Shown here one piece after another: positions 20,419 through 60,423 of a DNA stretch of 64,000 bases. A program made the translations under genes and the position numbers. This DNA is from Hyaloraphidium curvatum SAG 235-1. Its lineage: Eukaryota > Fungi > Monoblepharomycota. The stretch is taken from positions 688,702 through 752,701 of the forward strand of contig JAIVFI010000014.1 of the NCBI GenBank assembly GCA_025558095.1. Direction: 5' to 3'. Below the pieces are notes generated by a model. It did not search any database, had not been told where the DNA came from, and was given only the letters and a program-made list of their open reading frames with translations. How positions within the stretch are numbered: position 1 is the first letter of the stretch; every line of letters begins with the position of its first letter.

Positions 20419-21146
20419 ATGCGCACCGCCGTCATCCTCGTCCTTTTCGCGCTCGTGGCGTCCGCCGCCGCCTCGTGGGCCCCGATCTTGCCCTGCCTCT
20501 GCCTTCCGCGGCGCTAACTCCCGTCGCGTCGTCGGCGCCACCTTTCGCCGCAGGCCCGCCCCCGTCGCGCTGCACGCCGTGTTCAAGCGCACCTGCGCGG
20601 ATTGCGACGTAACCACATTCTGGTATCCGAAAGGCGCTCCCCGCGTCCCCACCTCGGCAGCTGATCACCGCCCCCCCACGCGCAGCGAGTTCGGGTACCC
20701 CGGCGCTCCCGAGGACCACGTCGCCTGCGTCGGCGCGACCGCCGCCCGCGCCTCCCTCTACAAGCGCTACGCGGTCGAGTGCAACCAGGGCGAGACAAAC
20801 TGCGGTACCTACTGCGTGCTGGACCTCAACACCGAGTCCAACGACTGCGGCTCCTGCGGGAACCGTAAGCCGGCATCTGCGCTGCCTTGTAACGCCGCCG
20901 ACCGATCCGCATCCCAGAGTGCACCAACGGCAAGCTCTGCGTCGGCGGGACCTGCAAATGCATTGAAGGGGAACAGCTCTGTAGCGGTTACTGCAAGGAC
21001 ACCAGCAGCGACAGCAGCCATTGCGGGACATGCGGGCACGGTCGGTCTGCGCGGCCGGCAGGCGAGGTGTTCGGTCGCTGACGATCGCCGCCGCAGTTTG
21101 CGCGACCGGCTACTACTGCTCGAACGGAGGATGCGTCCAGGAATAG
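20419..21146 (+). CDS. Small secreted Cys-rich precursor with STIG1-like repeats (5 exons)
   Basis: Spliced translation: MRTAVILVLFALVASAAASPAPVALHAVFKRTCADCDVTTFCEFGYPGAPEDHVACVGATAARASLYKRYAVEC...DLNTESNDCGSCGNQC...DTSSDSSHCGTCGHVC...CVQE*. The D-x-x-[NH]CGxCGxxC units are STIG1-type. Confidence 0.7.
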
Positions 21147-21329
21147 ATCCCATTGTCTGAGGACGGCCGCTTCCTTTGAGTGCGGAACGACCAAGTAAAG
21201 GGAGGAACACTTCAGTGTACGAGCTGCATGCGAGCACGTGCGTTGACGATGAGCTTCAGATCTTGCTCTCCCCGCCCGATACCCCGTAGACTCAGTTCCA
21301 CGCCGCCAGCTCCTCCGTTCCACAGGTCC

Positions 21330-22205
21330 CTACAGAGGCACTCCCCCCGCGGGCAGCGGTATGAACTCCGTCTCGCCAGGGACGGGATCGAACCGCCCCT
21401 GCGCCCAGTCGTCTGCGGCCTTGATGATCCGCTCGCGCCGGGACGAAACGAAGTTCCACCAAAGGAACCGGTGGCCCAGCGGGGCTCCGCCGACCAGTAC
21501 CGCGCGCGCGTCCCCGTCGACGGCAGACAGCGTGGGCGAGGAGCCGGGGGCGAGGACGAACATGGAGAAGGGGGGGATCTCCTTGCCGTCGATTGCTGCT
21601 TTCCCTTGCACGACGTAGACCGCGCGCTCCTCGGCTTGGGGGAGCGTGATACCTTGTCCGTCCGGCAGCGCCATGTCGAGGTAGATGATGGGCGAGCGAA
21701 CGGGCACCGGCGACGTTTCGCCGAACGCGCTGCCGAGAAGCACCCGCACCGTGGCACCGCCGACCTTGACTTCGGGCAACGCGCCCGCGGGGGCATGATG
21801 GAACGACGGCGCCTCCTCCTCCGCCTCGTCCGGCAGCCCGACCCACAGCTGCAGACCGTGGCTGCGGCGGCCGTCGACGCCCTTCAAATCCTCGGGCGTG
21901 CGCTCCGAGTGCACCACGCCGCGCCCGGAGATCATCCAGTTGATTGCGCCCGGCTCGACGCGCTGCACGGCGCCGGTCGAGTCGCGGTGCATCATGGCGC
22001 CCTCATAGACGTAGGTCACCGTGGCGAGCCCGATGTGCGGGTGCGGCCGCACGTCGTGGTTGTCGCCGGGCGCGGCTTCGACGGGGCCGAAGTGATCGAA
22101 AAAGACGTACGGACCCACGGCCTTGCGCGATACGGATGGCAGCAGGCGGCGCACGGTGAAGCCGCCGCCGAGGTCCTTCAGCACAGGCGAGAGGAGCTCC
22201 GCCAT
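21330..22205 (-). CDS. Pirin family protein, intronless, bacterial-like
   Basis: FFDHFGP, DVRPHPHIGLATVTY, HRDSTG, GRGVVHSE, GLQLWV, WWNFVSS. Confidence 0.93.
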   Translation of the reverse strand: MAELLSPVLKDLGGGFTVRRLLPSVSRKAVGPYVFFDHFGPVEAAPGDNHDVRPHPHIGLATVTYVYEGAMMHRDSTGAVQRVEPGAINWMISGRGVVHSERTPEDLKGVDGRRSHGLQLWVGLPDEAEEEAPSFHHAPAGALPEVKVGGATVRVLLGSAFGETSPVPVRSPIIYLDMALPDGQGITLPQAEERAVYVVQGKAAIDGKEIPPFSMFVLAPGSSPTLSAVDGDARAVLVGGAPLGHRFLWWNFVSSRRERIIKAADDWAQGRFDPVPGETEFIPLPAGGVPL

Positions 22206-29946: not shown

Positions 29947-30956
29947 TCACGGCTTCACCGCGACAACCTCGAGGAACTCGGCGTCGACGCGGACCTTCCC
30001 TTCCTCCCCGGCCACGTTGTGCCTAGCCCAGTGCTCCACCAGCTCGGCCTTGAGCTCCCCGCCCTTCTCGCCCAGAGCCTCGAAAGCCTTGACCGTGGGC
30101 CCGTAGTACCGCGCGAAGAAGGCCACGACGTCGGCCGCGGGGAACGGATACTCAAACGGGTAAGGCAGGCGTTCGGTCTTGACCTCCATGCCCGCGAAGC
30201 GGCGCCCGACGGTGGCTTCGTCGCCCCAGAGCACGGGCGACTGCATCATCGGCGAGGGCGGGGCGTGCTTGCCGACGATCTTGAACATCTGGCCGATGAA
30301 ACCCTGCGGCGTCCTGCGAGAAGACGGCGATCAGCTGGCGATCCGTGTCCGCAAGGGCGATCGCCTCACCAGTTGCACATGATGATCCTCCCGCCGGGCT
30401 TGCAGACCCTGGCCAGCTCCATGGCGACCTTGTCCCCCCTCGGCGCGAACATGGCCCCGAACATGCTGAAGACCACGTCGAACTCCCCGTCGCCGAAGGG
30501 CAGCTCCTCCGCGTCGCCCTCGACGAACTCGGCCGTGGCGCCCTCCTCCCTGGCCCGCTCACGCGCGCGGGCGACGAGGTTGGGGGCGATGTCGACACCG
30601 GTGACGTCGCAGCTCATCTTGGCGAGGGGAATGGCTGTCTGTCCGGCGCCGCACGCGACGTCGAGCACCTTCGTCCCCGCGGGGAACGAGTGCCGCGAGA
30701 GGTAGGCGATCGCGGCCGGGCGCATGTACTCGGCGAAGACGGCGTAGTTGCCCGAGGACCAAGTGGCCTTGAGCTTGGTCTGTGCGGGCCGGGAGGGCGG
30801 GATCAGTGAGAAAAGCTCGCTCGGGCGAGAAGCCACCACCTTGAGCATCGCGAACTCGGGGCTGGCGGAGACGTCCTGCTGCCCCAGCGACGGAGCTGCC
30901 TTTTCCATGGTGGCGGTGACGGGCTCGGGAACGGGGGGGACCTCGACGGGGGCCAT
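29947..30956 (-). CDS. Class I SAM-dependent methyltransferase (UbiE/Methyltransf_11-like), spliced
   Basis: VLDVACGAG, GVDIAP, EGDAEELPF, FDVVFSMFGAMFAP, RVCKPGG. Confidence 0.88.
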
Positions 30957-31340
30957 GGCGTGGTTGCGGCGCGGGGGGGTAGTGCGGTGCGGTGCGGTGG
31001 AGCTCGGCGCTGACGGGGGGCGGTCAATTCTGGCGCTGCTGGCGGCGGAAGAGCTGCTTTTGCACAGTTTCCCGAGGAAGCCAAGAAGGTGGAGCAGCGT
31101 TCCGTGCAGCGCTGTGGTCGAGAATAGGAGCCGTCGAGTCACCCGAATCATCCGCAACCGCGCAGTGCTGTGCTCCCATCCCCTGGCGGGAAGCCCTGCC
31201 CGACGGCACCTGCTTACCAATCGACGTCTGCGTATTTATGCAGGCGACGACGAAAACTACGGACCGGTGCGGATGGATGGGTGGTCAAGATGGAGATGAG
31301 GGAGTCGGCAGCGCCATCGGTCTGTCGCAGTTCGTCCAAA

Positions 31341-31369
31341 TAGTGTTAACGGCTCGGAGATTGGCACTA
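31341..31369 (+). repeat. Left terminal inverted repeat (including the terminal TA)
   Basis: 27/29 inverted match to 36854-36882. Confidence 0.9.
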
Positions 31370-31468
31370 GTTGTTGGGGAAATAGGCAAAATGCAACTAG
31401 AGAAATCCCCCTCGCCGAGTCCCTTCCCCGCCCGCCGTTCCCAGATCAACTTTGACGTGCCCGCAAAC

Positions 31469-32658
31469 ATGGAGAACACCCAGGCGAGCACCGCAATCAC
31501 GTCATCGCCGCTCGGGAAGCTCCAAAAGTCACGCCTGCGGAAGTGGAGAGACGAGAGCACCCGCATGGCCGCGCTACGCATGCTCCGGGACGGCAGCCCC
31601 ATGTCCGCAATCCGACGCACCCTCAAAGTCAGCAAGTCCTGCGTCTACCGCTGGTACAGGCAGTGGGAACAGGAACGCACCCTCAGCTGCAAGAAGCCCC
31701 CAGGACCGGCCCGCAAGTTCACGGACGCGGTGGCAGAGCTCGTCGTCGAGCACCTCGCTCAGCACCCCTCGTCGACTGCCAGGCAGCTCATCGCCGCGAC
31801 GGGCGCCCCGGTGAAAGAGAACGCCATCTACCGGAACCTCCGCCGCCTCGGGATCACCCACAAGAAAGCTGAGGACATGCCTGTCAACTGGCCCACCGCC
31901 GAACACATCGAGGACATCCGCACCTACCTGGAAACCATCGCCACCGTGCCCAAGGAGAAGCGCGTCTACATGGACGAGTCGTTCAGTCACCTCAACGCCG
32001 CCCCTACGCGCGGGTGGGCACGTCGCGGCCGCAAAGTCCGTCGCCACCGCGAGCGCCAGGCCCAGCGCTACATGTTCGCAATCGCAATCCGGCTTGATGG
32101 CCTGGTCCACCCGCCTGCCATATCGCGGGAGAACATGAGCGACGACGTGTTCATGCGGTACGTGCGCGCTCACCTGGTCCCCAACCTGCGGGAGGGAGAT
32201 GTTGTGATCTGGGATCGTCTCGGAAAGGTTCGGGCTCACTCTGGCAGAGAAACGCCTGACTGACTCGGCGATAGGCCGGGCGGGCGAAGAACCCATCCAA
32301 GCAGCACTACAACCCCGAAGCAAAGGCTCTGATCGAGGCAAAGGGCGCGCGCGTGGTGTTCTTGCCACCGAAGGGGAAGCAGTGAGCCCACGGAACATGC
32401 TCAGCGGTAGGGCGTGCTCACCATGCCCTCAGCTTCAACCCGATCGAGTTGTTCTTCGGCAAGGCAAAGAAGCACATTGAGCAGAGCTTTGTGGGCTCCC
32501 TTGCTGATCGGGAAGGGCGCCACCGGCGCGACGGCGAGCTGATCCGTGCCATCATGGAAGGTTGCGCGTCGGTGACCCCCAAGGACATCGCCGGATACTT
32601 CCGTGAGCGCTCAGACGACAGGGCGTTCAAAAAGGAGTATCCCTCCGTCGAATTGTAG
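31469..32658 (+). CDS. IS630/Tc1-family DDE transposase, 3 exons (31469-32227, 32275-32381, 32433-32658), about 363 aa
   Basis: N-terminal HTH (PMSAIRRTLKVSKSCVYRW), second HTH, LGITHKK, catalytic VYMDES, VIWDRLG and FLPPKGKHFNPIE. Removing two GT-AG introns gives one open frame. Confidence 0.9.
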
Positions 32659-32672
32659 CTAAAACACTTGCA

Positions 32673-33368
32673 CTAGAAACGCTCCCTGGGTCCGTTGTGC
32701 CTCTGGCAGCGCGTCGAATCGCAGCAGTGGTAGCACTTCTGCTGCCGGCAGGCGATGGCTGCCAACTCTCCGCAATCGCACACAGGCCCATCCTGATCGC
32801 TGTCGTCGTCGTCCGAGTTGTAGCCACGGGCCTCCCTTTCGCGTTGCGCCGCCTCGCGCTCGGCCTTCCTTTCCTCGTCTCGCCAGCACTTCTCGCACCT
32901 GCCATCGTCCATGCAGAAAGAACACCTATCGCACGTCGCACACTGAACGTCCGAGATACAGTTCTCGCAACCCCAGTCACAGCAGTCGTCGTAGCAGAAG
33001 ATCCGGAAGTCCTCCCACACCGGCTCGCCGCATTCGCAACGATGGATCTCCTCCAAAGTATCGTTTATGACGTCCTCAGTCCTTTCCGTGGAGGGCTTGC
33101 TCAACCAGGCGCCGCGAGACGCTTCCAGGATGGCCTTGTTTGAAAAGGAGAAGCGAGCCGCTGCGACGGTATCCGCCGCGTCGCGCGACCGCAAAAGGGC
33201 ACGAACGATGGCCTCCAGCACCTCCAGGGGCATGGAGGTGAGCGTGGGCGCGGCGGGAGCGGCGGGCGCGGAGCTCTGGTCAGGCGCAGGGTCCGTGTTG
33301 TCCGGCATGGTGGGCGCCACAGGCAAGCCCTCCACAGTGTTTGCGCGCTCAATTCCGCTCAATTCCAT
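32673..33368 (-). CDS. Transposon cargo gene: F-box-like N-terminus plus Cys-rich putative zinc-binding domains, intronless
   Basis: TLTSMPLEVLEAIVRAL (F-box-like); CECG, CCDWGCENC, CATCDRCSFC, CEKC, CDCG...CRQQKCYHCCDSTRCQRH. Lies inside the TIRs. Confidence 0.65.
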   Translation of the reverse strand: MELSGIERANTVEGLPVAPTMPDNTDPAPDQSSAPAAPAAPTLTSMPLEVLEAIVRALLRSRDAADTVAAARFSFSNKAILEASRGAWLSKPSTERTEDVINDTLEEIHRCECGEPVWEDFRIFCYDDCCDWGCENCISDVQCATCDRCSFCMDDGRCEKCWRDEERKAEREAAQREREARGYNSDDDDSDQDGPVCDCGELAAIACRQQKCYHCCDSTRCQRHNGPRERF

Positions 33369-33613
33369 TACAGACAGGCGGCGGAAAAGGCTTTATGGCT
33401 TTCTGGCGTGTTTCGTAATCGAACGGAGGAGAATGTTCGATCAGTTTCCATCAGATTCCGCTTGCGCAAGCGCGGCCTATTTGAGGGCGCGCACCCCCGG
33501 TCTTCCCCTCATCACTGCCACACCCCCGGCGCCCGCGGTGAGTCCCGGCGCCCGTCCGCCGCGCCTGGATAAGTTTCGGTGCTGATACTCATAGCAGGGC
33601 GCGCGGCGAGGCC

Positions 33614-36600
33614 ATGGCAGGGCGCAAGCGACCAGGTTTTGCCGGGCCTTCCGGCGGCCCCGGTCCCCCCGGCGACTACGACGACGAGCACGACCCCGGC
33701 GAGGGCTCCTCCACCAACCCACCGCCGCCCAAGAAACGCAAACCGCGCGCGGACCTCGTCGTCGGCCCCGACGGCGCGCTCCTGCCGTTCCCCATCGCCA
33801 CCAAGGGGCCATGCGACCAGCTCATCTGCACCAACGCGGACCACTGGCGCGACGCCAAGCTCCACGACGGCGACACCTGCGAGCTAGAGATCTGCGGCTC
33901 AACCACCCACCATCCCGGCCACCATTTCGTGATCAGCGACCCCCGACTGCCTGTCACGTGCGAGAAGTGCGGCGGAGACCACCACACCGCCGTGCACGAC
34001 GAGCTCCAGCGCAAAGATGGCAAGGATCTCGTCGATTGTGACGTCTGCGGCGGCCAGGGGCACCTTCCCGTCGCGCATGAGCATCCCTGCCGACACATCC
34101 TCTGTCTCGGACACTTCGATCCAACGCACCAGCACGACTACATCGACGCGGACAACCCAAAGAGCTGCGGCCCCCTTCTCGCCCTCTGTGGAAGCGTCAA
34201 TCACTCCGACGGCGCGCACCTCACCAACGACGTGCGGCCCTTGTTCTGCACGGTCTGCGGCTCCAGCGACCACGCCTCCAAGCAGCACGACGCCGCCATC
34301 ACGTTCATGCACAACAGCGGCGACAATGCATGTGGACACGTCGGGCACAATCGCATTGGCGAAAAGTGCCTGTTTAGGTCCAATGATCTGAGGCAGCTGA
34401 CGCCGAAGCAGACCTTGGAGAGGGAACTTGGACCTGACGCCGAGAACGCAACGGTGGTGATGGCCCTACAGGCGTTCACGCGCTTGCCGTCGCGGCGGAA
34501 GCACGATCCCGTCCCCGCCGAAGGGTCGCAGGAGGATCTGGATGAGGACTTTGCCATTGAGCTCCTGGCAACGATCGACGATGCCGAGCGCAGGACCACG
34601 CGCCTCATGGCGACCGCTTCCCTCTTCCTGGACCTGCTCTTCAAGCACTGCCGTGATTCCGCCCTACCGTTTCCGGAAGTGAACCAGACACTGCTCTGGC
34701 AGATCTTCATTGCGGTATCGGCGGACAGCGGCGGCGTTTCCCACGCCACAGTGCGCTACGTCAAGGAGAAGATCTGGGACCCCCTCGTTGCCGCTCTCCC
34801 TGCGGGAACCTACCAGCGCACGTCTCGGGACGGCTTGACGCAGATTCTCCAGATTACGGCCCTTCAGCATGACACCATTGCCCTGAACCATGTGAACACC
34901 AACCTGCGAACGCGGGTGCGGAACTACGTGCTCACCCACATCCGCCTGGCGCTCCACGCGGCCGGGCGCTACGGGCGCAATGGCTACGGCCGAAAGGATA
35001 CGCAGATCATGGCCAGCTACATCACCAACAGCTTGGCGGACTGGGATCCGAGGGAGCACGGAGGTGGTGGTCAGCCGACGTTCACCATTCAGGGCACAGG
35101 GGACTTTGCGGCGGAGCTACGCCTGGACCTCCCCGTTGTCGCCCTCTGCAACGCCACCTTTGAGCACGTGCGCGACGAGATCATCGGCGAAGGGCGCTAC
35201 CTCCACCCCTACTGGGTCAAGAGCAACTGGCAGAAGTGGTGGAGCCCGCTTTTCCGGATCCAGTGTGCGTTCGAGACCTGGCGTGCCCAACTCGCGACGG
35301 ACTTGCGCGCTGCCAACCCCACCAACAAAGCCGAGCGCAGGGCATTCTACGATGCGCACCCCATTCGGCCCAAGCAGGTCAAAGCGTTCAACATCCTCCC
35401 CATCTACACGACGGAGGCCAAGTTCATCACCATCGAACGCCAGTCGCTGCACCACATGATCAGCCTCACGCGCAGACGGCTAGGCATGCCCCCGCTGACC
35501 GAGGCCGCCTACAAGGCAGCGGAGAAAGCGAACCCGCTCGCCTGGTGGGGCCGCTACTTCCGCCCTGAGCTCGTCACCACGTTCCAGCAAGGGCCTTTGC
35601 CGAAGGAGGCCACGAACCGGTTCCCGACGCTGGTTCAGCGCGCGTTCTACTACTCCTTTGCCACCAACGGCATCCAGGCATCCGTTCACGTGCTTACTCG
35701 TCCGCGGGAGAGGGAGCCGGAGCCGCGCTATCCAACTGCACAGGAGCTCATCGACAAGACCATCGTGGCGGGAGACCCGGGCCGCGACGTGATCGTGGAC
35801 GCCTCCTGCGGCGCCATCGACGACACGATCACCAAGAGCCATGTCGTCACCATCACGAACGCCGAATACTACCATGAAGCCGGCTACACGGAGCAGACGC
35901 GCAAGCTCAACGTGCGCAAGAAGCGGGACCGGATCATCAGGGAGATCGAGAGCCAGGCGCCTCTGGCCAAGCCGTTCTCTTTCATGGACACCATCGTTCA
36001 CCTCCGCTACTCGCTCATTCACCTTGCGCGCGTGACTGCTTTCTATGGGACACGCGTTCACCGCAGGTCGCGGCTCTCCCGCTACATCGGCAAGCACCGC
36101 GCGCAGGAGGTGCTCGGCGCCAAGTTCCTGAAGGCGACGGGCGTGCGCGACGCGCGGGACTTGGTTGTGGGGTTCGGGGCAGCCAAGTTCCGGCACAACA
36201 GCAGGGGGAGCGCGACCGGCCCCAGCTCGTCGCTCCCATGGCTCAAGCGGTTCCTGCGCCGCTACGGCGCCTGGATCACTCCGGACGTCGACGAACACAA
36301 CACGTCGCAAACCTGCCCGTCGTGCACGGGCAAGGTTGCCAAGAGGACACACCGAGGAGGGCACTACCGGGTCAAGGTGAGCCGAACGCGTCTCCCGTGC
36401 CGCGCAGCTTCCAATCTAATCGCCGTGCCTTACAGGATTGCAAAAATCCGAATTGTTTGACCAAGTGCTGGAACCGGGACGTCATGGCAGCGACGAACAT
36501 CCGCACCCTCATCATCTGGATGTCCTGCCACGGGCGGCGGCCTTCCCAGTTCCGCCCGCGGAACGACGGCGGTCCGCAAGACGATCCCGCGTTTGTGGCA

Positions 36601-36663
36601 GAGACCGCGCGCGCCGGGTTCATCAACGCGCACGTGGACCAGATCATGGCGGAGGCGAACTGA
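33614..36663 (+). CDS. Fanzor1-type RNA-guided RuvC endonuclease (eukaryotic TnpB homolog), 2 exons (33614-36376, 36436-36663), 996 aa
   Basis: RuvC-I VAGDPGRD; VVGFG at the canonical RuvC-II position with the relocated Glu in VDEHNTSQTCPSC; zinc finger completed by CKNPNC; RuvC-III WNRDVMAATNI after a 59-nt intron (gtgagc...ctaat...tacag). Also FNILP and FATNG motifs and an NLS-like PPPKKRKP. Confidence 0.9.
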
Positions 36664-36900
36664 AACGGGTCCGTGTGACCCTCCCATTGTCTCGGCGCGC
36701 AGAACACCTTCGGAGCACGGGAGGCTGGGCTGTGTTATTGCCGCCGGGACGCTCGGTCAAGCTTAGGCTGTCGAGTATGGTAAACGGTATCGGGAGTTTA
36801 AAGAGCACAGCTCTTAGCATTTTTGGTTAGCCGGGGTGCTTAGACGCGATTGTTAGTGCCACTCTCCGAGCCGTTAATACTATAGGCCAATCCCCCACCG
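36664..36900 (+). ncRNA. Putative Fanzor omega-RNA: scaffold up to the right transposon end, guide from flanking DNA
   Basis: Lies between the Fanzor stop codon and the right TIR, the known omega-RNA position, and contains several G-U-containing helices. Exact boundaries are unknown. Confidence 0.65.
36854..36882 (-). repeat. Right terminal inverted repeat (including the terminal TA)
   Basis: 27/29 inverted match to 31341-31369. Confidence 0.9.
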
Positions 36901-36937: not shown

Positions 36938-38653
36938 ATGGCGGACCTCTCGGTGTGGTTCCGAGCGTGCAAGGACGGCGCCATCCCCGCGGCCGAGCCG
37001 TTCCTCGCTTCGCCGACGTTCGACCCCGACGCGCTCGACTCCAACGGCTTCACAGGGTTCGCGCTGGCGTGCCACAACGGGCGCCACGAAATGGCCGCGA
37101 GACTGTTGAAGGAGCCGCGGATGAACCCGAACAGGGTCGTCAAGGGCGGCTACACCGCGATGCACCTCGCGTGCCGGTCGGGCCGCGGCAGGGTCGCCAA
37201 GCTGCTCGCCGACGACCCGCGCGTCGACCTGAACGCGGAAAAGGACGACGGCCTGACGCCGCTGATGCTCGCCGCCCGCGAGGGCCACGCCAAGATCGCG
37301 GAGATGCTGCTGAAGCTCGGCAGGGAGCGCAACGTGCGGCCCGACGCGGCGGACGTCAAGGGCAACACGGCCTTCATCTACGCGTGCTCGACGTCGTCGC
37401 TCGAGTGCATCGACGTGTTCCTCAGGCACCACCGGCGGGTGGCGGTCAACGTTCAGAACAAAGACGGGGAGACGGGGCTCATTGTCGCGTGCGTCATGGG
37501 CAACTCGCAGGTGGCCAACGACCTGCTGCACTACCCGGACCTGCTGGATCTGTCCTTGGCCGACAACGCCGGCAACACGGCCTTCCACCACGTGTGCAAG
37601 AACAACGACCTGGAGCTCGCGCGGTCCTTCCTGAAGCACCTGGACCAGGTTCCCGTCAACGCCGCCAACCGGGCCGGCAAGACCCCGCGCGACCTCGCGA
37701 CCGGGGAGCGGTTGCGCGCGCTAATCGACCGCGAAGTGATGCTTTACGAACGGAGCCCGAGCAAGCTTCGTGTCGACAGCTCGCGCGTCTCGTACGACCG
37801 CACGAAGGTCCTTGGGAAGGGGGGCTTCGGCGCCGTTTACAGGGGCACCTTCAAGGAGGAAGTCTCCCCCGGTCGGTTCCGTGACGTCGAGGTTGCCGTC
37901 AAGGAATCGCTTCAGGGCTTTGCGGACGCCAAGATCAGGGCGCTGTTCGACAAGGAGGTCCGCGTGTGGACTGCCCTTGGCAGGGGCCACGACAACGTGC
38001 TCAAGCTCCTGTCTTACTCGGAGGACCCCCTGGTGATGGTTTGTCAGTACGCCAACGCGGGTAACTTGCAGGAGTACCTGTTGCGGATCGCCGGGGAGCA
38101 GGACTACTACCGCCGCGCGCTCCAGCTGCTCCTCGGCGTTGCCAAGGGGATGGCCTTCATCCACGCGTCGCACGTAGTGCACGGGGACCTCAAGGCGCTC
38201 AACGTGCTCGTCGACGCGCGCCCCGGGGGCGGGCCGGTGCCGCTCATCGCGGACTTTGGCATGTCGCGCGTGCGCATGCAGGTGTCCATCACCATGGGGC
38301 AGGCCGACGCGGTCGAGGGCACGCTGGGGTTCCTGGCGCCGGAGCTGCTGCAGGGCGCTCTGGATGATTTCCCGACGCCGCGCAAGGCCAAGAAGGCCGA
38401 CGTGTTTGCCTTTGCGATGGTGGCGTACATGGTCTCGAGCAGGGGCAAGGAACCCTTCCACGACGCCAGGTTCAGGAGCGACAAGGAGCGCATGGGCGCG
38501 ATCCTGGCGGGGCAGAGACCGCGGCCGCCGGCGGATGCCCCCAAGGGGCTGGTGGAGCTGATGGCGCGGTGCTGGGCGGCGGATCCCGAGAAGAGGCCCG
38601 AGTTTGCCGAGGTCGTGCGCGACCTGGACGCCGTGATTGCCGCCGCTCCGTGA
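36938..38653 (+). CDS. Ankyrin-repeat tyrosine-kinase-like (TKL) protein kinase 1, intronless
   Basis: Several ankyrin repeats (GYTAMHLAC, GLTPLMLAA, GNTAFHHVC); GKGGFG, VAVK, HGDLKALN, DFG, APE, DVFAF. Confidence 0.92.
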   Translation: MADLSVWFRACKDGAIPAAEPFLASPTFDPDALDSNGFTGFALACHNGRHEMAARLLKEPRMNPNRVVKGGYTAMHLACRSGRGRVAKLLADDPRVDLNAEKDDGLTPLMLAAREGHAKIAEMLLKLGRERNVRPDAADVKGNTAFIYACSTSSLECIDVFLRHHRRVAVNVQNKDGETGLIVACVMGNSQVANDLLHYPDLLDLSLADNAGNTAFHHVCKNNDLELARSFLKHLDQVPVNAANRAGKTPRDLATGERLRALIDREVMLYERSPSKLRVDSSRVSYDRTKVLGKGGFGAVYRGTFKEEVSPGRFRDVEVAVKESLQGFADAKIRALFDKEVRVWTALGRGHDNVLKLLSYSEDPLVMVCQYANAGNLQEYLLRIAGEQDYYRRALQLLLGVAKGMAFIHASHVVHGDLKALNVLVDARPGGGPVPLIADFGMSRVRMQVSITMGQADAVEGTLGFLAPELLQGALDDFPTPRKAKKADVFAFAMVAYMVSSRGKEPFHDARFRSDKERMGAILAGQRPRPPADAPKGLVELMARCWAADPEKRPEFAEVVRDLDAVIAAAP

Positions 38654-43817: not shown

Positions 43818-44986
43818 ATGCGCGCCGCCGCCGCCGCCCTCCTGCTCGCCGCCCTCGCGGCCATCGGCACCGCCGATGCGCACATCCAGATGACGAACCC
43901 CATTCCCCGAGGCTCGCCGCAGGGCCCCTGGCCCGAGAGCCAGCGCGACTACTCGCTCATGTCGCCCCTCGACAACGGCGGGATCGGCCGGACGTACCCC
44001 TGCCAGGGCAAGGTGCGCTTCTCAACCCGCGATGCTGAGGCGGCCACGGATCGCTCACCAATGCCCATCGCAGCCCAAGGGCGTCAACACGGCGACCCTC
44101 TATGCCGGCAGGACCGTCAACGTGACCTGGGCCGGCTCGGCGATCCACGGGGGCGGCCACTGCCAGCTCGCGGTTTCTTACGACGGCGGCTCCACCTTTG
44201 TCGTCCTGGACACGATCCTGGGCGACTGCCTCGTCCGCGGCATGTCGTACCCCCTGACTCTGCCCGCGGACCTGCCGCGCGCCACCTCGGCCATCTTTGC
44301 CTGGACCTGGGTGAGTCGATCGATGCCCACCACCAGGATGAGCTGACGGACGAGAACAATCACGCCAGATGAACCGAATCGGCAACCGTGAATACTACAT
44401 GAACTGCGCGGACGTCGAGATCGTGTCCAACACCTGCGGGCCCTTCACCGCCCCGCGCCTGTTCGTCGCCCAGGTCGTGCCGCCTTCGACGCAGGTGTTC
44501 CCCGAGTGGGGCACCACGGGCAACGACTACAGGAACGAGCTGCTCAACGGGCGGCCGGCGACGACTGTTGTTGGGGACGGGTGCGCTGGGGCAACGCCGC
44601 CTTCTCCCGCTCCGGCGCCCGCTCCTGCGCCTGCGCCTGCGCCCGCCCCCGCTCCTGCTCCTGCTCCTGCTCCTGCTCCCGCTCCGGCCCCGGCCCCGGC
44701 CCCGGCTCCCGCTCCCGCTCCGGCGCCGGCCCCGCCGCCGCCTCCTCCGGTACGTTCACCATCGCCAATCGCGGCCACATTTTTGCCTACCGCGGCTCCC
44801 CTCCAGACCGGCGTCCTCCCCGCCTGCACCTCGGCCAACAACGGCCAGCAGATCTGCCCCTCGGCCGCGCACCCCGGCTTCTCATGGTGCGTCAACGGCG
44901 TCTGGATCCAGCAGGCCTGCCCCGCAGGCACGGTGTGCAGGGCCCTGAGCGCCACGCAGGTCGTCTGCGACTGGCCCCAGGCCTAG
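43818..44986 (+). CDS. Secreted lytic polysaccharide monooxygenase (AA11-like) with (PA)n linker and C-terminal CBM19-like Cys domain, 3 exons
   Basis: Signal peptide ending ADA followed by His1 (HIQMTNP), [29 protein letters not shown], and C-terminal C...C...WCVNGVWIQQACPAGTVC. Confidence 0.8.
44606..44735 (+). repeat. Coding hexamer tandem repeat encoding the (Pro-Ala)n linker
   Basis: About 20 degenerate CCN-GCN units, in frame within the LPMO gene. Confidence 0.9.
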
Positions 44987-45523
44987 TCAAAGGGAAGGGG
45001 GAAGGACGCTTCGGGTGGACGGAGCAAGGGTGGAGGGGGAAAGCACATTGTCTAGTAGCACGAAAGGCGCGCCTGGCCGCGCCGGATATCTGTTGTCTGT
45101 GTCACCTCTGACGCAACACGAGCCGGTTCTCGCACCACATCGATCGCCTACGTCCATCGCAGAGAGCAAGCGAGCCCGAGAACTAGGAGCAACAAGCGAT
45201 TCGGGATCAATCGAGCGGCGCAGGGGACCTACCTGACGCTGGGGATGGCGTGCGGGTTGTGGCAGACCCAGACCAGGTCTGCCGAGGACACACTACTCCC
45301 CGGTCTGGGTCTGTCACAGGGTGAGCGGCCGTGGGGCGGGGACGCGGGCGGCGGGATCCGGCGGGGCTCGTGCCGGGCGTCGGGATCGGATGATCGGGGC
45401 ATCGCACGGGAGGAGCTTCGACGTGGGGTCCATTGTCGGATCTTGTGACAACAATGCATGGGTCCGTCCGGCGGTGACGCGTCGCGTCATGCATTGCCCC
45501 TCATCCACTCCCTAACCTCCGCC

Positions 45524-45940
45524 ATGTCGCTCTCCGCGCCCCTCTCGACCACCCTCCTCCTCCGCGCGCCGCTCGCGTTCGGCGCGTACCTCTCCGCGTG
45601 GTCGCGCCTGCTCTCCCCGCTGTTCCTCGCGCCGCTCCCTTCCGCCGCGGCCCCGACGCTGCGGGCGACCGGCGCGCTGTCGTGCGCCGCGCTCGCGGGG
45701 GTGCTCTTCGGTTTCGGGCACTTCCAGGTGGCGGTGGGTTGCGGGGTGGGCTACTTCCTCGGCCGCGCGGCGGACGCGGGCGGGTCGGCGTGGGCGCGGG
45801 CCGCGGACGCGTTCGGCGCGCTGGACGGGCGCGACAAAGAGCTGCTGACGCGGGGGACGATCACGGTGGTGAACATCGTGGGGGCGGTGCTGGCGCTGAG
45901 GGGGGAGGCGGGCGCGCTGGCCGCGCTGGCGGGCAAGTGA
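45524..45940 (+). CDS. Small hydrophobic membrane protein of unknown function
   Basis: gccATG context; several hydrophobic segments. Confidence 0.5.
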   Translation: MSLSAPLSTTLLLRAPLAFGAYLSAWSRLLSPLFLAPLPSAAAPTLRATGALSCAALAGVLFGFGHFQVAVGCGVGYFLGRAADAGGSAWARAADAFGALDGRDKELLTRGTITVVNIVGAVLALRGEAGALAALAGK

Positions 45941-46129
45941 GGCCGCGGGAGGGGGAGCGCGTTCCAGGCCGTGGGAGGTCATTCATGGCGATGCGTTCCT
46001 TGATCGAGTAAGGTATACGGTGTAGATGTGATGATGCCTAGATGGTCAGAGAGTGTCGGTATCTTCCATGTCCAAGAAGGCATCCCGGCGCCGTTCCGGG
46101 TCCCCTCCCCTTGAGTCCCGCGCCCCCTC

Positions 46130-47266
46130 CTACGCCGCAACGCACACCACCACGCTCCGCCACAGCACCGCCGCCCCGCCCCCTTCGACGACCCACCCCT
46201 GCTGCCCCCCCGGCTCCGCCACCGCGAGGGCGGTGAACCTGTCGAAGGAGACGGTGGCGTTGCGGTTCCACTGCACCGTCTGCCCCGCCGGCACGCTTAT
46301 CTCGGCGCGGAGGAAGCCGTCGCGGTCCGAGTAGAGCACCGCGGTGCCCTGCGCACGGAGGGCGAGGGAGAGGAAGGTGACGGCCGCCGGGGGTGCCTGC
46401 GGCGACGAGAGCGAGATCGACAGGAGGGAGAGCGAGGACGAGGAGAGGTCGAGACTGAGCGGGCCGAGCGGGATGGCGGCGTTGGGGGTGGCCGGGTCCG
46501 CCAGGCAGGGGATCAGGTCGACGCAGGTGCGGCCGTCCACGGGGAACGGGGCGCAGACGGGCTGCCATGCGCCGTCGGGGGAGGGCGGGGCGCAGGCGGG
46601 GAGGGTGGTGGTGACGGTGATGACGGAGGTCGAGGTGGTGAGGGTGGTGGAGGTGGTGACCGAGGTCGAGGGGACCACGGTCGTCGACGTGGCCAGGCGG
46701 GTGGAGGTGGTGGTCGCGACCGAGGTGAGCCACTGCGTCGCCTGCACCCAGGCGGTCTGCGTCTTCCGCACGGTCGAGGTGGCGAAGCGGGTCGATGTGC
46801 GCAGGCACAGCGTCGCGGTGGTGCGGAGGGTGGTCGTGCGGGCGACCCAGCGCACCGATGTCCGCGTGGAGGTGCGCCAGGCGGTGCGCGTGATCGTCGG
46901 AGTCCGCGTGATGGTCCGCGTGACGGTGCGGAGGACGAGCTGGCGGGCGCGCAGCCGCCCGGCTCCCGCAGCCGAGTCCGCGTGCGGGTCCGCGGGGGCG
47001 CCCTCCCGCCCGGCATCGGCGGGCACCGCGGCGCCCATCGCGGTCACCGCCGCGGCGAGCAGCAGCGCCGCCAGCAGCAGCAGCGCCCACCGGGGCCGGC
47101 CCGGCCCGCGCACGGTTTCCCCCGCGCCGACCCGCCGGCGCCCCCTCCCGCCCCCCGCCGGCTCCCCGCCCTCCGCCGGCCGGGGATCCCGGTGCCCAGA
47201 TTCAATATAGGTATGTGTCCGCCTCGGAGGGCCCATCAGGGGCCCGCGAGGGCGTGGAGGTGCCAT
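46130..47266 (-). CDS. Secreted or membrane-anchored protein with an Arg/Thr-rich mucin-like stalk
   Basis: Hydrophobic WALLLLAALLLAAAV segment, then TVTRTITRTPTITRT...TTSTTLTTSTS, then a small Cys-containing beta-rich domain. The start is uncertain. Confidence 0.55.
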   Translation of the reverse strand: MAPPRPRGPLMGPPRRTHTYIESGHRDPRPAEGGEPAGGGRGRRRVGAGETVRGPGRPRWALLLLAALLLAAAVTAMGAAVPADAGREGAPADPHADSAAGAGRLRARQLVLRTVTRTITRTPTITRTAWRTSTRTSVRWVARTTTLRTTATLCLRTSTRFATSTVRKTQTAWVQATQWLTSVATTTSTRLATSTTVVPSTSVTTSTTLTTSTSVITVTTTLPACAPPSPDGAWQPVCAPFPVDGRTCVDLIPCLADPATPNAAIPLGPLSLDLSSSSLSLLSISLSSPQAPPAAVTFLSLALRAQGTAVLYSDRDGFLRAEISVPAGQTVQWNRNATVSFDRFTALAVAEPGGQQGWVVEGGGAAVLWRSVVVCVAA

Positions 47267-47622
47267 TGTGTGTCCGATGATTGCGGCGCGCGGGGCTGAG
47301 CCCGCTCCGCCGCGGCGGCATCCCCAGCCGGGCCCAGCGCGCAAGGTTCGGCAACGCCGCCCGAGACCGCGCCGAAGGGACGGGATCCGCCATCCGACAG
47401 ACAGTCGGCGGTCCGGGGGCCGCTTTGGTCGCCCGCTGTTCCGGCCGCTCTCGGGCACGGAGGGCGGGCCCCGCATCGGAGGGCCGGCGGCGATCTGCGC
47501 CGATCGCGGACGCGGGGTGGGACGGTGGATGCGGGGAAGATGCTACGATTACCCAACACGGGCAGCGCACGGTCTCGCTCCCCTCTTCCTCCCTCCCCGC
47601 CGCGATCCCGTCCCCGGCTCCC

Positions 47623-48755
47623 TCAGAGGTTCTTGCCGAGGAAGTCCGCCGCGTCCTCCACCGCCTTCTCCACCGCGGCCTTGACCTCGGGGCTGGCCAT
47701 GTTGCCGATGTCGGCGCGGTTGACGAAGCCGTGCTTGACGCCCTTGAAGGCGATCACCTCCGTCGCGGGCTGCACGGCCTTGAGGGCCTTGTAGTACGGG
47801 CCGTCCTCGCTGCAACGGGGCGGCGGCGTCAGTCCGCGGTATCGCGAGGGGGGAGGCGGCGCCGCACGCACAGGTAGACGGGGGGGTCGTTCTCGGCGGG
47901 GCAGAAGAGCATGGGCGCCGACGACTTGCCCAGCAGCTCCGCGGCGTTGCCCCCAAACACAAAGTCCTCCAGGTGGATCGACGGGTGGAAGATGGCCGCG
48001 GCATTGACGTGCGGCTTGAGGTCGGCGTCGCCGGCGGTGTGGGCAATGACCCAGCCTCCCCTGCAAAGCGCGCGGGGCGGTGAGCCGGCGGCGGCGGCGG
48101 GGAACGCGGCGGGGGACAGACCAGCAGTACCCGACCATGCCGATCTTCTCGGCGCCGCCGGCCTTGAGCGCCTCGAGGCACGCCTTGATCTTGGCCTTGA
48201 GCTCGGGGAACTTGAAGTTCTGCAGGTAGCCGACCAGGTCGTTCATCCTGTTCTCGATGTCGAAGTCCGGGGGCAGGGCTGCCGCGCGGCGGAGCGTCAG
48301 CGACGGGCGGCACGGGCAACGCGGGCGCAGGACGCACCGTCGCCGTCGGTGCCGCCCTCGAAGGGCGGGGTGAGCAGCTTGGGCACCATGACGCGGTACC
48401 CGCCGTCGCCGTAGTTGTCCGCGATCCCGCGGAGCCGGCCCGAGTTCCAGCCCCACACGTCGGGGATCATGAGGATCTGCGGTTGCGGCGATGCGGCGGG
48501 GGGCACCGGCGGGAGGCAGTCAGCGGCGCGGACGGCGGGAGGGGACGGCGACCCATACGGCCTTCTTGGCGTCGGCGGGGCCGGTGGTGTACACCTCGAG
48601 GCCGGAGGGCAGCGTGCCGGTCTTGCCCTTGGTCGCGTAGTCGGCCTTGAGGTAGCTGGTGCGGCGGGCGGGCGGGGGTGAGCGCCCGCGCGGCGGGGGC
48701 GGCGGCGCACGCACGGCTCCGAGTTGGGCGGGCAGCACGGCGCGGTGGACGACAT
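47623..48755 (-). CDS. Dienelactone hydrolase family protein (copy 1), multi-exon
   Basis: CCPP N-terminus, IPDVWG, GYCWG nucleophile elbow, FHPS, ENDP, HGFVNR. Confidence 0.88.
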
Positions 48756-50195
48756 GGCGGCGGCGGGGATGCGGGGCGGCGGCCGGTGGGGCGGATGGAA
48801 GGGGGGAGACGGTTTGGCGGACGCGTCGGCACGCGCGCCGATCCCGCGGGCGCGGGGTGGGCCCCGGCGATCGGGGGCCGAAGGAGGGCCGGATGCCTTC
48901 TCCGGACCGGTGCAACCGATCAAGAAGATGGAGTTGAAGGTGGATGGACGGGCGATCCGCTTCGGGAGGACCGCTCGCGGCGGATTGCACGCCGGAACGT
49001 GGTGGAATTCGCACTTCGAACGGCAAGAGATTGTGGACCGACGGCACAGAAGGGTCCGCATCGTCAACCATAGTGTTTCTTAATCAGTTCCACGAACTGC
49101 TGGTTTTTATTCACCTCGAGGCTGGCCGGCCCCAACTGTACGCGGCACGGCAAGCCAAACCTCCGGTTCAGTTCGTGCAGGTGCGTGCGGAGGCGACGTG
49201 GAGGCGGTAACCGCGCGGTGGTTCATGAAGAGGGATCCTTGCGTGGAGTCTGGAGTCTGGAGCCGTTGTTCACATTTATCCACAGCCAAAACAGGCTCAC
49301 AACCCCGCTTTCTCCGGGCCCGTCGAAGCTCAGTCCAGACTCTTTGTGCCCGCCACGGCTGCCGGCACCTGCAATCAGCCTGCGGCGACCGCGACAGCAA
49401 ACCGCAGCACCTACCCCGCTCTCACGACTACACGATTGGATCGGGCGCACGCCCAGACCCGCCCAAGGACCCTGCTATCCACTGCCAGGCGCAAACAGAA
49501 TGCATTCGGGAGGACTCCGGGCGCAGGACAGGCCTGCAAAAGCGTTCCGAAGATGCCATCCGCCATGGGTGCGCTGCGTCGTGCGGGACGGACAGGGCGG
49601 CGGGGGAGCCTGATGCCGAGCCGACTCGGGCCGCCCCCGCTCCAGACCAGCGCGCTCGCTTGGCGGCGCCCGTTCCGCGCGGCGCAAGGCCATCGGCAGG
49701 AGACATCGGCCACAGAAGATGTGCATGCTGCTGTTCTCGGAGGAGGCATGGTGCTCGATAGTAGAACGTCCAAACGGTTGGGGGTACGCGACAAGGTCGA
49801 GGGCCCTCTACATGTGCTCTGCACGCCAGGGGCTTACGGAGGCCCCGGTACGCGGCACGGCACCGATCGGCAACGCGGGATCATGCTTTGCGTCCGCGGC
49901 AACGGCGGCGGCTCTGCTTGGAGGCTTTTGGGACGGCCAGGACTAGGAATCGGGCTCGCCGCAGGGTGCGGCCACGCGGCCGGCCGGTCTGCCGGTCGGG
50001 TATGTGGTCTGGTGGAGGCGGCGGCTCAGAGGCGCGACGAGATGGAAGCGTAGCCCTTGGATTCTTCGAGAGCTGCGATCCAACTGCTACCTCAGCTCCA
50101 AAGAACTAGCCATCTCAATGGACCAATATAGCGGTGCGGTCTTGGGCCCTGACTGCAAGCAATCCTTGCGCATGTTCCGCACTTTCCTTTGAACG

Positions 50196-51032
50196 ATGCG
50201 CACCTTCCCGCCGCTGCTGGCGATTGCCGCCCTCACCGTGCTCGCGCTTCTCGCGTGGCCGATGCCGTCCGCGGTTGCCGCGCCCGCCGCGCGCGCGCCC
50301 TCCGCGCCCGGCGACGCCGCCCGCCTCGCGCCGCGGCAGCCGCGCACCTCCGCGCGGCGCCGCACGACATCGCGCCGCGCGACGCCCCGCGCATCCACGA
50401 CGCAGCGCCGCTCGTCGACCGCTCGCCGCTCGTCGACCGCTCGCCGCTCGTCGACCCGCGCGGTGGGCGGCCGCCGCACATCACGCCGCGCCGCTAACTC
50501 GTACCGCTAATTCGCACCGCCAACCCGCACCGCTAATTCGCACCGCCAACTCGCCCCGCAGACCACCGCACGCCCGCCCACGCCGTCCGTCTACTGCCGC
50601 CGCCCGGCGCTCGCGATCCCCGACCCCGGCAACGCAACCGACGCCGTGCTGGTGCCCGCCATCGGCACCGTGCGCGACCTCGACCTCGTGCTCGACGTCC
50701 TGCACCCGTACGCCCCCGACGTGTTCATTTGGCTGCGCAGGCAGGACGGCCGCACCGCCTTCGTCTTCCGCACCTACCCCGACTCGCGCAGGCGAAACGC
50801 ACGGCGCGCCGTGGCCCCCGCAGCTTGCCTTCAGGTGCGGCGCAACATCACGCTGGACGACGCCGCCACGGTGGGCCTGCCGACCTGCGCTCCACCACGG
50901 ATGCGGCCAACGGAGGGCCTGGACAGGTTCAACGGCGGGCCAGCAGGGGGCCTGTGGAGGCTTACGTTGCGCGATGCGGTCGCCCAGGACAGGGGGACCC
51001 TTTACGGCTGGTGCCTGGTCATCCGCGTGTGA
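50196..51032 (+). CDS. Secreted protein with Arg/Ser/Thr-rich linker and a stand-alone proprotein-convertase P-like domain, one intron
   Basis: Signal peptide; IPD...VRDLDLVLDVLHPYAPDVFIWL...LDRFNGGPAGGLWRLTLRDAVAQDRGTLYGWCL matches the P-domain pattern (H...DL...L, GxWxLxVxD..D.G.L..W.L). Confidence 0.7.
50409..50457 (+). repeat. Coding 18-bp tandem repeat (about 3 copies, RRSSTA)
   Basis: cgctcgtcgaccgctcgc units. Confidence 0.75.
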
Positions 51033-51302
51033 GCGGGGGACTGCTCATCATAAGGCGCAGGGGTTCGGTGTGCCGCGCAGGCGGGATATGTAGACGACCC
51101 ACTAAGAATACCGCGCAAGCCCAGACCCGCGCAGGGCCGCTTTCTCTTGTGACTGGCGTGCGGGATGCTCTGTTGAGAAACTCGGACGCAGGGCACGGTT
51201 TTCATAAGCCCTCGAAGGTGCCCTAGTGCACCATGTGGAGCGGACGGAGGGGTTGGGGAGGCGTTGATGCGACATGCATTTGCTGACCCGTGTGGCTGCG
51301 CG

Positions 51303-52958: not shown

Positions 52959-53110
52959 CCGCGTCCAATGCAGGAGAAGGGAGGGCGGCCCGTTGACGCG
53001 ATCGCGTTGTCGGCCAAGGGCAAGGGCTTGCCATGCCGATCTTCCGCGCCATCCTCGCCCCGGCCATCGCGGCGTCCTCAGCCCCTCTGCGCCTCCTATC
53101 CGCCGCAAAG

Positions 53111-54318
53111 ATGTCGTCCGGCTGCTGCCCGCCCAACTCAGAGCCGTACCTCAAGGCCGACTACGCGACGAAGGGCGCCACGACCACCTTGCCGTCGGGC
53201 GTCGAGGCCTACGTCGTCGGTGGGCGGATCGGCCGCCGGACGCGTGGAATCCCGCTCATCGTGCCCGTCCGTGTGCGATGCAGGCCCCAAGGATGCCAAG
53301 AAGGCGGTCGGTCCCGCTGCCTTGGCCCCGCGCGTGGCCCCCGCTCACCCGACCGTCCCCCACGCCCTCCCTTCCCGCTCCCCAGATCCTCGTGATCCCC
53401 GACGTGTGGGGCTGGAACTCGGGCCGTGTCCGCGCCATTGCCGACAACTTTGGCGACGGCGGCTACCGCGTCGTGGTGCCGAAGCTGCTGACCCCCCCGC
53501 TCGAGGGCGGCACCGACGGCGACGGTGGGTCCGGTTGCCCATCACGTGTGGCGACCGGGGAGCTGATATCGCCCGCCACCCACGTCCAGCGCTGCCCCCG
53601 GACTTTGACATCGAGAAGCGGATGATGGACCTCGTCGGGTACCTCAAGAAGTTCCCCTTCGCCTCGAGCCTGAAGCCCAAGGTCGCCTCGTGCCTCAAGG
53701 ACATCAAGGCCGGCGGCGCGGACAAGATCGGCATGATCGGATACTGCTGGTTTGCCCCCGCTCCGTCAGGGCTGTCGGGATCACGGCTGATCCCGGTCCC
53801 GCCCGCCTGCCAGGGGAGGCTGGGTCATCGCCCACACCGCCGCCGACCCCGCGGCCGGCCCGCTCGTCAACGCCGCGGCCATCTTCCACCCCTCGATCCA
53901 CCTCGAGGACGGCGTGTGGGGCGGCAAGGCCGCGGAGCTGCTCGGGAAGTCGTCCGCGCCGATGCTCTTCTGCCCCGCCGAAAACGACCCGCCGGTCTAC
54001 ATGTGGGTCCGCCGCCGCCGATGCTTGCGTTGGTTCCGGTGCTGATGGGCGAAACACGGCAGTCCGGGCGGCCCGTACTACGACTCGCTCAAGAAGGTCC
54101 AGCCCGCCACGGCCTCGGTCCCTTTCAAGGGCGTGCAGCACGGCTTCGTGAACCGCGGGGACTTGGCCGCGCCCGGCGTGAAGGAGGCCGTCGGGAAGGC
54201 GATCGACGACGCCGCGGCGTTCTTCTCGACCACCCTGTGGGTTGGCCCGTCGCTAGGCGGACGGATGCGGGGTTGTGCTGACCGTACGTTCGGCAGGGGA
54301 TCGGGACAGAAGCTCTAA
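53111..54318 (+). CDS. Dienelactone hydrolase family protein (copy 2, inverted paralog), multi-exon
   Basis: CCPPNSEPYLKADYATKG, IPDVWGWNSGR, GYCW, ENDPP, HGFVNR; highly similar to 47623-48755. Confidence 0.88.
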
Positions 54319-54399
54319 AGGGCGGCAATATCATGGCAGCCACCTTGTTCTCCGAGCGATTACAAGTAAACCGACGCCCCGCGGTCGAAGCTGATTCAT

Positions 54400-60371: not shown

Positions 60372-60423
60372 TAGATCGGCCGACGGGCCGGGCGGCGATA
60401 CTCCCACCCCACCACTCCCTTCT

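Follow-up and report, generated by a model that had tools for sequence, protein, structure and literature searches.

What is the element that lies between two host genes close to the telomeric end of a scaffold of the fungus Hyaloraphidium curvatum SAG 235-1, and do its genes work together? The stretch of DNA that we analysed (the window, 64,000 nucleotides) is the last 64 kb of the 752,701-bp scaffold JAIVFI010000014.1 (assembly GCA_025558095.1) from this monoblepharid (zoosporic) fungus, the G+C content of which is ~65%. We conclude with high confidence that positions 31341-36882 of the window (5,542 bp) are an intact three-gene transposon of the IS630/Tc1/mariner superfamily that carries a Fanzor1 gene. 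The only GenBank model within the element is a truncated 215-aa helix-turn-helix (HTH) protein, DFJ74DRAFT_669128 (31391-32097, or 10001-10707 of locus L007, which covers scaffold positions 710092-730798 and is 100% identical to window 21391-42097). The DDE part of the transposase, a Cys-rich open reading frame (ORF) and the entire Fanzor gene are unannotated, and protein-based surveys would therefore miss the Fanzor.

The Fanzor1 gene

With its single intron removed the Fanzor gene encodes a protein of 996 residues and, as a sequence-only reading of this locus had claimed, neither stop codons nor frameshifts are present in any exon of the element. The exons were searched and folded separately, and whole-protein tests made use of natural intronless homologues. 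Exon 1 alone gives weak matches because the intron splits the zinc-finger domain: it scores 17.3 bits against Pfam PF07282 (cut-off 26.3) and finds Guillardia Fanzor1 in the PDB at E = 0.009. The closest relatives, P0001, P0002 and P0003 from Logan and ENA metagenome assemblies (~46% identical), are intronless, score 28.7-30.9 bits against PF07282, which is above the cut-off, and are continuous across the junction (HYKVK/DCKNPNC). P0001 and P0002 read ...HYKVK/DCKNPNCLIKCWNRD... at this point; the relatives' ...GHYKVK-DCKNPNCLIKCWNRDVMAA... is to be compared with ...GHYRVK/DCKNPNCLTKCWNRDVMAA... in the window. These intronless relatives provide strong comparative evidence for the predicted intron, on which RuvC-III depends.

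The three RuvC acidic residues and the CxxC...CxxxxC finger that had been read from the sequence are all present and align with the family. D721 lies in DPGR, DEHNTS is found at 893 and CPSC at 901, while C-x4-C and NRD are contributed by exon 2. The C-terminal motif described by Bao & Jurka (D ... [TS][TS]xx-C4 ... RD) is represented by D721, T897-S898, C901-x2-C904, C-x4-C and NRD. The second acidic residue, E894, is placed six residues ahead of C901, and Gly855 occupies the canonical position of the RuvC-II Glu. Relocation of this Glu, with replacement of the canonical residue by Gly or Pro, has been described for Fanzors and TnpB2 (PMC10530073, PMC13565253). The earlier reading of a relocated Glu was correct; the description of the relocated Glu as a Fanzor signature was too narrow, since it occurs in some bacterial TnpBs also (PMC10530073, PMC13565253) and is not exclusive to Fanzors.

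An exhaustive HMMER search recovered 198 relatives of the Fanzor; in the ten that were scanned PF07282 is the sole Pfam domain, above the cut-off in nine. An alignment of 89 sequences has D721 (DPG) and G855 invariant and E894, S898, C901, C904, the two later Cys and the Arg of NRD nearly so. A four-sequence profile searched against the PDB matches SpuFz1 (E = 2e-7) and GtFz1 (3.4e-6), with no other match at E < 0.2. In the profile alignment, which extends over DExxTSxxCxxC and WNRD, E894 falls on SpuFz1 E541 and the exon-2 WNRD on SpuFz1 D606, both of them catalytic residues in the published structure (PMC10432273). Over residues 412-787 the ratio of nonsynonymous to synonymous substitution rates (dN/dS) is 0.15 against L004, a 78%-identical metagenomic sequence that is itself interrupted by a frameshift and a stop codon.

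Modelled with AlphaFold, exon 1 has a per-residue confidence (pLDDT) above 90 for residues ~260-900. The best seven matches in the PDB are all Fanzor1 (SpuFz, PpFz and GtFz), with E-values from 3.4e-17 to 8e-15 and template-modelling (TM) scores, by target length, of 0.52-0.65. They are followed by Cas12h/i/m/f and TnpB at E = 1e-5 or worse, and in the structure searches Fanzor2 (9B0L) and TnpB (8H1J) are matched at no better than E ~1e-3. The complete RuvC fold was assessed on a model of the intronless P0002, which matches SpuFz1 (8GKH) with a TM score of 0.75. The sequence-only reading had made its identification depend on a RuvC fold, and such a fold is predicted here, within the Fanzor1 architecture of REC, WED, RuvC and NUC. 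On the evidence of these profiles and models the nuclease is a Fanzor1, and Fanzor2 and prokaryotic TnpB are more distant from it.

The N-terminal residues 1-270 are modelled with an AlphaFold confidence of less than 50. This region holds a basic nuclear localization signal (NLS), KKRKPR at 40-45, of the kind usual at the N-terminus of Fanzors (PMC10530073), together with 16 Cys and 23 His. Three clear C-x2-C-G-x3-H-x4-H motifs, resembling zinc knuckles, form an array at ~60-270. The N-terminal region is conserved in P0001, P0002, a paralogue on scaffold 2 of the same genome and the relative at locus L008, and the N-terminal 269 residues have no PDB sequence match and no Pfam match. A narrow literature search found no published report of a knuckle-like Cys/His array on a Fanzor, and the feature is apparently new. 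The paralogue just mentioned (L005 8391-11878, scaffold JAIVFI010000002.1) is a second Fanzor of the subfamily, 32-43% identical by tblastn. It has the same N-terminal Cys/His array, is frameshifted, carries WNRF in place of WNRD and has been annotated as a hypothetical protein of 625 aa (KAI9033133.1). Another, more distant PF07282-like gene of H. curvatum, the third, lies on the minus strand at L005 ~20448-21878. A search of JGI metagenome contigs and viral contigs with the subfamily alignment found no related loci.

Transposase, element ends and the Cys-rich gene

The spliced transposase comprises 363 residues and its triad of D169, D249 and E294 is aligned with that of homologues, with a spacing of 44 residues between D249 and E294. 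Pfam assigns exon 1 to HTH_23 (4e-9), HTH_32 and DDE_3 (29.5 bits, cut-off 28.6). NCBIfam assigns it to IS630 at 2.7e-24, the score of 86 bits for exon 1 alone standing against a 100-bit cut-off set for the whole protein. Both introns of the spliced DDE transposase proposed earlier are confirmed by comparison. The intronless metagenome homologues P0162, P0163, P0164, P0170 and P0171, and the remnant at locus L010, are continuous through the two junctions, and their sequence, VVIWDRLGK/AGRxKNPxKQHYNPE...FLPPKGK-x-FNPIEL, exactly reproduces the junctions predicted from GT..AG. The branch motifs of both introns are CTRAY-like, and if intron 2 were kept unspliced it would introduce an in-frame TGA. 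Translation may start at the in-frame ATG at 31391, which is the GenBank choice, or at 31469, which is matched by the start of the L008 relative. An annotated H. curvatum hypothetical protein is 99% identical to transposase exon 1. In P0155 and at L010 3568-3723 there is a 17-residue insertion where other homologues have a lone His before YNPE; this probably represents a 51-nt intron left unspliced, in a place other than those of the introns in the window.

The element is bounded by terminal inverted repeats with TA at the outer edges, and the bounds and the match of 27 out of 29 positions given by the sequence-only reading are upheld. Repeat-finding returned the inverted pair 31340-31369 / 36854-36883 (30 nt, 93% complementary) as the sole long one around the region. 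The end repeat is unique within the window, where shuffles predict no matches, and an exact search of JGI metagenome contigs with the end sequence gave none. Duplication of TA is a hallmark of IS630/Mariner elements (PMC13565253, PMC3627910). By analogy with solved Fanzor1 complexes the TA at the left edge may also serve as the 3' part of the target-adjacent motif (TAM).

Between the two enzymes is the Cys-rich ORF, placed tail-to-tail with the transposase and head-to-head with the Fanzor gene. It has two relatives, P0179 (48% identical) and P0180 (46%), and the family displays 57 invariant columns, among them ~18 Cys, and a C-terminal RHNG.R..F. On its 13-kb contig P0179 sits between an opposite-strand gene for a 1009-aa PF07282 protein and a 76-aa remnant of an HTH_23 transposase, so that the contig mirrors the order seen in the window (Fanzor, Cys-rich ORF, transposase) with most of the transposase deleted. 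The same contig bears a second Fanzor gene of this type with a 261-aa HTH/DDE_3 gene directly upstream, and a phospholipase-D-like gene lies between its two Fanzor genes. At L008 a flanking fragment matches the N-termini of the window Fanzor (37% identical) and transposase (52%), and at L010 a Cys-rich ORF is tail-to-tail with a truncated, frameshifted transposase. No Cys-rich ORF is present beside the Fanzor genes of L001, L002 and L003.

Searches with the Cys-rich ORF gave no Pfam match at E = 10 and no NCBIfam match at E = 1; its profile against the PDB produced an insignificant B-box-like match alone (TRIM5, E 0.39), and there is no similarity to the Fanzor N-terminus. The earlier description of the ORF as a cargo gene is right in that a 231-aa ORF is present, and it understates the case. 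Judged by its conservation at the matching place in a diverged relative, the ORF is a conserved member of the element lineage rather than random cargo, though not one that Fanzor universally needs. Its product is probably a zinc-binding accessory factor of the element family. A further idea, which we regard as unlikely, is that it functions as the third component of a distinct lineage of Fanzor1 transposons, zinc-binding, divergently transcribed and outlasting the transposase, and that together with the N-terminal array of the Fanzor it modulates guide-RNA loading, target choice or transposase activity. If true, this system would be the first in which a Fanzor has an accessory protein dedicated to it.

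The positions of the features are collected in Table 1.

Table 1. Features of the element and its right flank, in window coordinates
Feature	Position	Strand	Basis or comment
TA, left outer edge	31341-31342	.	Read in the sequence; flank CCAAA/TA; presumed target-site duplication
Left terminal inverted repeat	31343-31369	+	25/27 pairing with 36854-36880; 27/29 including TA
Transposase exon 1	31469-32227	+	253 codons; HTH domains, D169 (VYMDESF), D249 (VIWDRLGK)
Transposase intron 1	32228-32274	+	47 nt, GT..AG, CTGAC branch motif; predicted, with intronless homologues
Transposase exon 2	32275-32381	+	35 codons + 2 nt; aligns with AGRxKNPxKQHYNPExxxLIExKGxxLxFLPPKGK of homologues
Transposase intron 2	32382-32432	+	51 nt, GT..AG; predicted; homologues uninterrupted at LPPKGKxFNPIEL
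Transposase exon 3	32433-32658	+	Catalytic E294 (FNPIE) and stop codon
Cys-rich ORF, 231 aa	32673-33368	-	ORF call; two homologues
Divergent intergenic region, 245 bp	33369-33613	.	Between Cys-rich ORF and Fanzor gene, from gene positions; presumed bidirectional promoter
Fanzor1 exon 1	33614-36376	+	921 codons uninterrupted; NLS, Cys/His array, REC/WED, RuvC-I, E894, C901, C904
Fanzor intron	36377-36435	+	59 nt, GT..AG, CTAAT branch motif; predicted; splits zinc-finger (TNB) domain
Fanzor1 exon 2	36436-36663	+	75 codons + stop; C-x4-C half of zinc finger, RuvC-III (WNRD)
Candidate omega-RNA scaffold	36664-36880	+	217 nt untranslated, stop codon through right inverted end
Right terminal inverted repeat	36854-36880	-	Partner of left repeat
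TA, right outer edge	36881-36882	.	Presumed target-site duplication; by analogy last omega-RNA scaffold bases (PMC13565253)
Would-be guide template	36883-36897	+	Flank TAGGCCAATCCCCCA, 14-15 nt; by analogy with SpuFz1

The insertion splits a divergent intergenic region of ~180 bp. On the left is a class-I methyltransferase gene (30366-31220, minus strand) with its start 121 nt from the element. On the right is an ORF for an ankyrin-repeat protein kinase (36938-38653, plus strand, 571 aa), the ATG of which is 55 nt past the element; GenBank places the start of this ORF later, at 37304, and a second ankyrin-kinase gene comes next. No exact match to the kinase ORF product was found among recorded proteins. 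The element may now supply or disturb the promoters of both neighbours. Some 27 kb separate it from a telomere-like (TTAGG)n array of ~39 copies (63808-64000), with a 5-nt unit as against the common TTAGGG, that ends both window and scaffold. The segments 10000-14000 and 44000-62000 have a G+C content of 70-76% and contain several short tandem repeats rich in G+C, one of them at 44600-44746 (period 6/12/36). We considered whether the window might be prokaryotic or viral and reject this, since its flanking genes, introns and telomere repeat are eukaryotic and L007 is identical to H. curvatum over its full length (100%); nor is the contig human.

Candidate omega-RNA and mode of action

The region that follows the Fanzor stop codon has the same position as the SpuFz1 omega-RNA (PMC10432273). 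The 217-nt structured spacer noted earlier is found there and folds somewhat better than shuffles (z = -2.1); an Rfam scan of the whole window returned no families. A motif, CCCATTGNCTN6GCAGA (36683 onward), is located 17-20 nt past the stop codon in the window, in L001/L003 and in L002, the proteins of which are only ~45% identical to the window Fanzor. The bases after CCCATTG pair with those before a second shared motif, CGCTC, to give an anchored helix of nine consecutive pairs in the window (36689-36697 / 36742-36750) and eight in L001. At five of the seven positions that differ both sides of the helix are changed, and in a scripted anchored check a random 3' arm equals this at a frequency of ~1e-3 per sequence.

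L001 and L003 are ENA GROS21 metagenome scaffolds on which a single related Fanzor element is present twice, at different sites. The stretch common to both copies ends ...GCACCGAGCCC (L001 4685), 239 nt past the stop codon. The L003 copy has lost the RuvC-I region and is frameshifted. Transposase, Cys-rich ORF and clear inverted ends were not found at either locus, and a separate 39-nt inverted-repeat structure occurs at L001 150-489. In the predicted fold of the window region the subterminal AAACGGTATCGGGAGTTT (36778-36800) pairs with the right inverted end (36858-36880). This segment resembles a degenerate internal copy of the left end, and the pairing would give a terminal hairpin in a read-through transcript.

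Transcripts of SpuFz1 run 14-15 nt past the conserved region (PMC10432273), and in the complexes that have been solved the TAM includes the 5' duplication and the scaffold the 3' one (PMC13565253). A mode of action can be proposed along these lines. The transposase would act on the element by cut and paste at TA sites. An RNA transcribed from the 3' region, extending through the right end and ~15 nt of flank, would serve as omega-RNA, and the KKRKPR signal would take the complex of Fanzor1 and RNA to the nucleus. The predicted TAM is AT-rich and would consist of the left flank and TA, ..AAATA (31336-31342), to be followed by the right-flank sequence. TAM and guide-matching sequence would be adjacent only in an unoccupied site, ..CCAAATATAGGCC.., and since this combination would exist only where the element is absent the complex would cut an allele that lacks it, or a donor site from which it had been precisely excised. 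With an occupied copy as template, repair would then bring the element back or duplicate it. We put this sequence of events forward as a whole with slightly more doubt than conviction. Its last steps amount to homing-like retention, which the sequence-only reading also proposed; it is not new but a published hypothesis, carried over from the TnpB of IS605/IS607, and for cut-and-paste DDE elements the benefit of homing is debated (PMC13565253).

Alternatives

Several points weigh against a mobile, guide-directed Fanzor1 element. The profile and fold support comes from separate exons and from homologues, and the Asp-Glu spacing of the transposase exceeds that of classical Tc1. The mismatches at two of the 29 end positions could mean some age, and the TA at both edges is a presumed duplication that a chance TA would resemble. 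With respect to the RNA, the covariation in the helix is real but thin, drawn from two independent lineages; when the 3' regions were aligned automatically for RNAalifold the shared motif came out misaligned and the covariation term was negligible, and past the Fanzor genes of L005 and L006 a search for the motif gave nothing. Splicing, omega-RNA production and the RNA ends are features that we infer from the sequence, as we do mobility, with a single element copy in the 64 kb examined. Finally, a DDE transposase that excises its element leaves a break behind in any case, in most instances together with a footprint, so that any benefit of re-cutting is uncertain (PMC13565253). That the element is young and active, the earlier reading having called it young and possibly active, is at best possible.

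The single copy also suits a different view, in which the element is an immobile, fixed relic with genes kept intact through recent insertion or host co-option and a Fanzor that no longer serves transposition. The annotated transposase fragment is alone in its 90% cluster (one member, one contig), the ends are mismatched, the other Fanzor of the subfamily recovered from this genome, at L005, is frameshifted, and a position so close upstream of the kinase ORF is one from which the element might now supply a promoter. Nevertheless, all three ORFs, the three introns and the full set of catalytic residues are intact, which is an unlikely state for a neutral relic of 5.5 kb, whatever its age. In addition, the dN/dS value shows that the protein evolved under constraint and related elements are multicopy in metagenomes (L001, L003). 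We consider a relic unlikely, though worth keeping in mind.

It is quite improbable, in our opinion, that the Fanzor unit (gene, RNA region and perhaps the Cys-rich ORF) became nested by chance in an ordinary Tc1/IS630 transposon to which it is functionally unrelated. Chimeric Fanzor elements are common (PMC3627910), and L001, L002 and L003 demonstrate that Fanzor1 genes of the subfamily also occur without a nearby transposase or Cys-rich ORF. However, no internal inverted repeat brackets the Fanzor part, and the candidate RNA region continues into the outer right end, which is what one would expect of a nuclease that makes use of this end. The order of Fanzor, Cys-rich ORF and transposase moreover recurs in the relative with the 48%-identical Cys-rich protein, on a contig that has a second transposase and Fanzor pair. 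A Fanzor that is nuclease-dead or guide-less, acting as an RNA-guided DNA binder or regulator in the manner of the TnpB-derived TldR, would have a precedent, TnpB domestication being documented (bioRxiv 10.1101/2023.11.30.569447). The long N-terminal Cys/His array is atypical, and CrFNuc, an intron-containing Fanzor1, gave no cleavage in vitro (PMC10530073). Against this, D721, E894, the Asp of NRD and four zinc ligands are present and conserved in the family, and the gene is inside a transposon beside its end, not at a host locus, which makes such a role very improbable.

Comparison with known elements

Our preferred reading, an intact transposon with its own Fanzor1, describes a kind of element that is already known. 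Mariner elements flanked by TA and containing both transposase and Fanzor1 were reported as PUl-1 from Pythium ultimum and PGv-1 from Phaeocystis globosa virus (Bao & Jurka, 2013; PMC3627910), and autonomous Mariner/Tc1-Fanzor associations were listed by Jiang et al. (2023; PMC10530073). Like PUl-1 and PGv-1, the H. curvatum element combines terminal inverted repeats, presumed TA duplications, a transposase of the Tc1/mariner superfamily and Fanzor1 in a single unit, and PGv-1 also has a third gene between the transposase and Fanzor1. Compared by description with these elements and with the associations of Jiang et al., the present one differs in its host, a monoblepharid fungus. Its third gene encodes a Cys-rich protein, where the known Mariner-Fanzor1 element has a GIY-YIG nuclease. 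It differs from the Mariner-Fanzor1 elements also in the N-terminal extension of the Fanzor (~270 aa, with NLS and knuckle-like Cys/His motifs) and in the host-type short introns of its genes.

The best structural and profile match is SpuFz1 of the Spu-1 elements of Spizellomyces punctatus (Saito et al., 2023; PMC10432273; PDB 8GKH, 9CEU-9CEZ). The catalytic layout is shared, including the Glu six residues ahead of the zinc finger, but sequence identity is ~15-17% and the protein has 996 residues compared with ~640. Spu-1 elements are ~2.1 kb long with no transposase within their ends, whereas one is present here. With bacterial TnpB (IS200/IS605, IS607; ISDra2 TnpB, OMEGA) the Fanzor shares the core of RuvC and zinc finger, as the Foldseek match to 8H1J indicates, and may by analogy share the logic of a guide read out from the right end and a TAM at the left flank. 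The partner transposase is of the DDE type here, as opposed to HUH or a serine recombinase, and the inverted ends with a presumed target duplication, the relocated Glu, the NLS, the intron and a protein more than twice as long set the element apart from the bacterial systems.

The locus is thus a new, unannotated and unusually complete example of a described kind, and the literature searched yielded no paper that treats Fanzor and Hyaloraphidium together. The features new here, the conserved Cys-rich partner gene and the N-terminal zinc-knuckle-like array, are worth following. The element bears on the question of what Fanzor does in eukaryotes; SpuFz1, the best-studied fungal system, has no transposase within its ends (PMC10432273). 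The Fanzor protein of H. curvatum, with its unusual N-terminal array, adds another candidate to the programmable nucleases. A single culturable fungus here holds an element in which the transposase, the nuclease, the candidate guide RNA and the two ends are all intact, a natural test bed for the debated question of whether a DDE transposon of the cut-and-paste type gains anything from an RNA-guided nuclease (PMC13565253).

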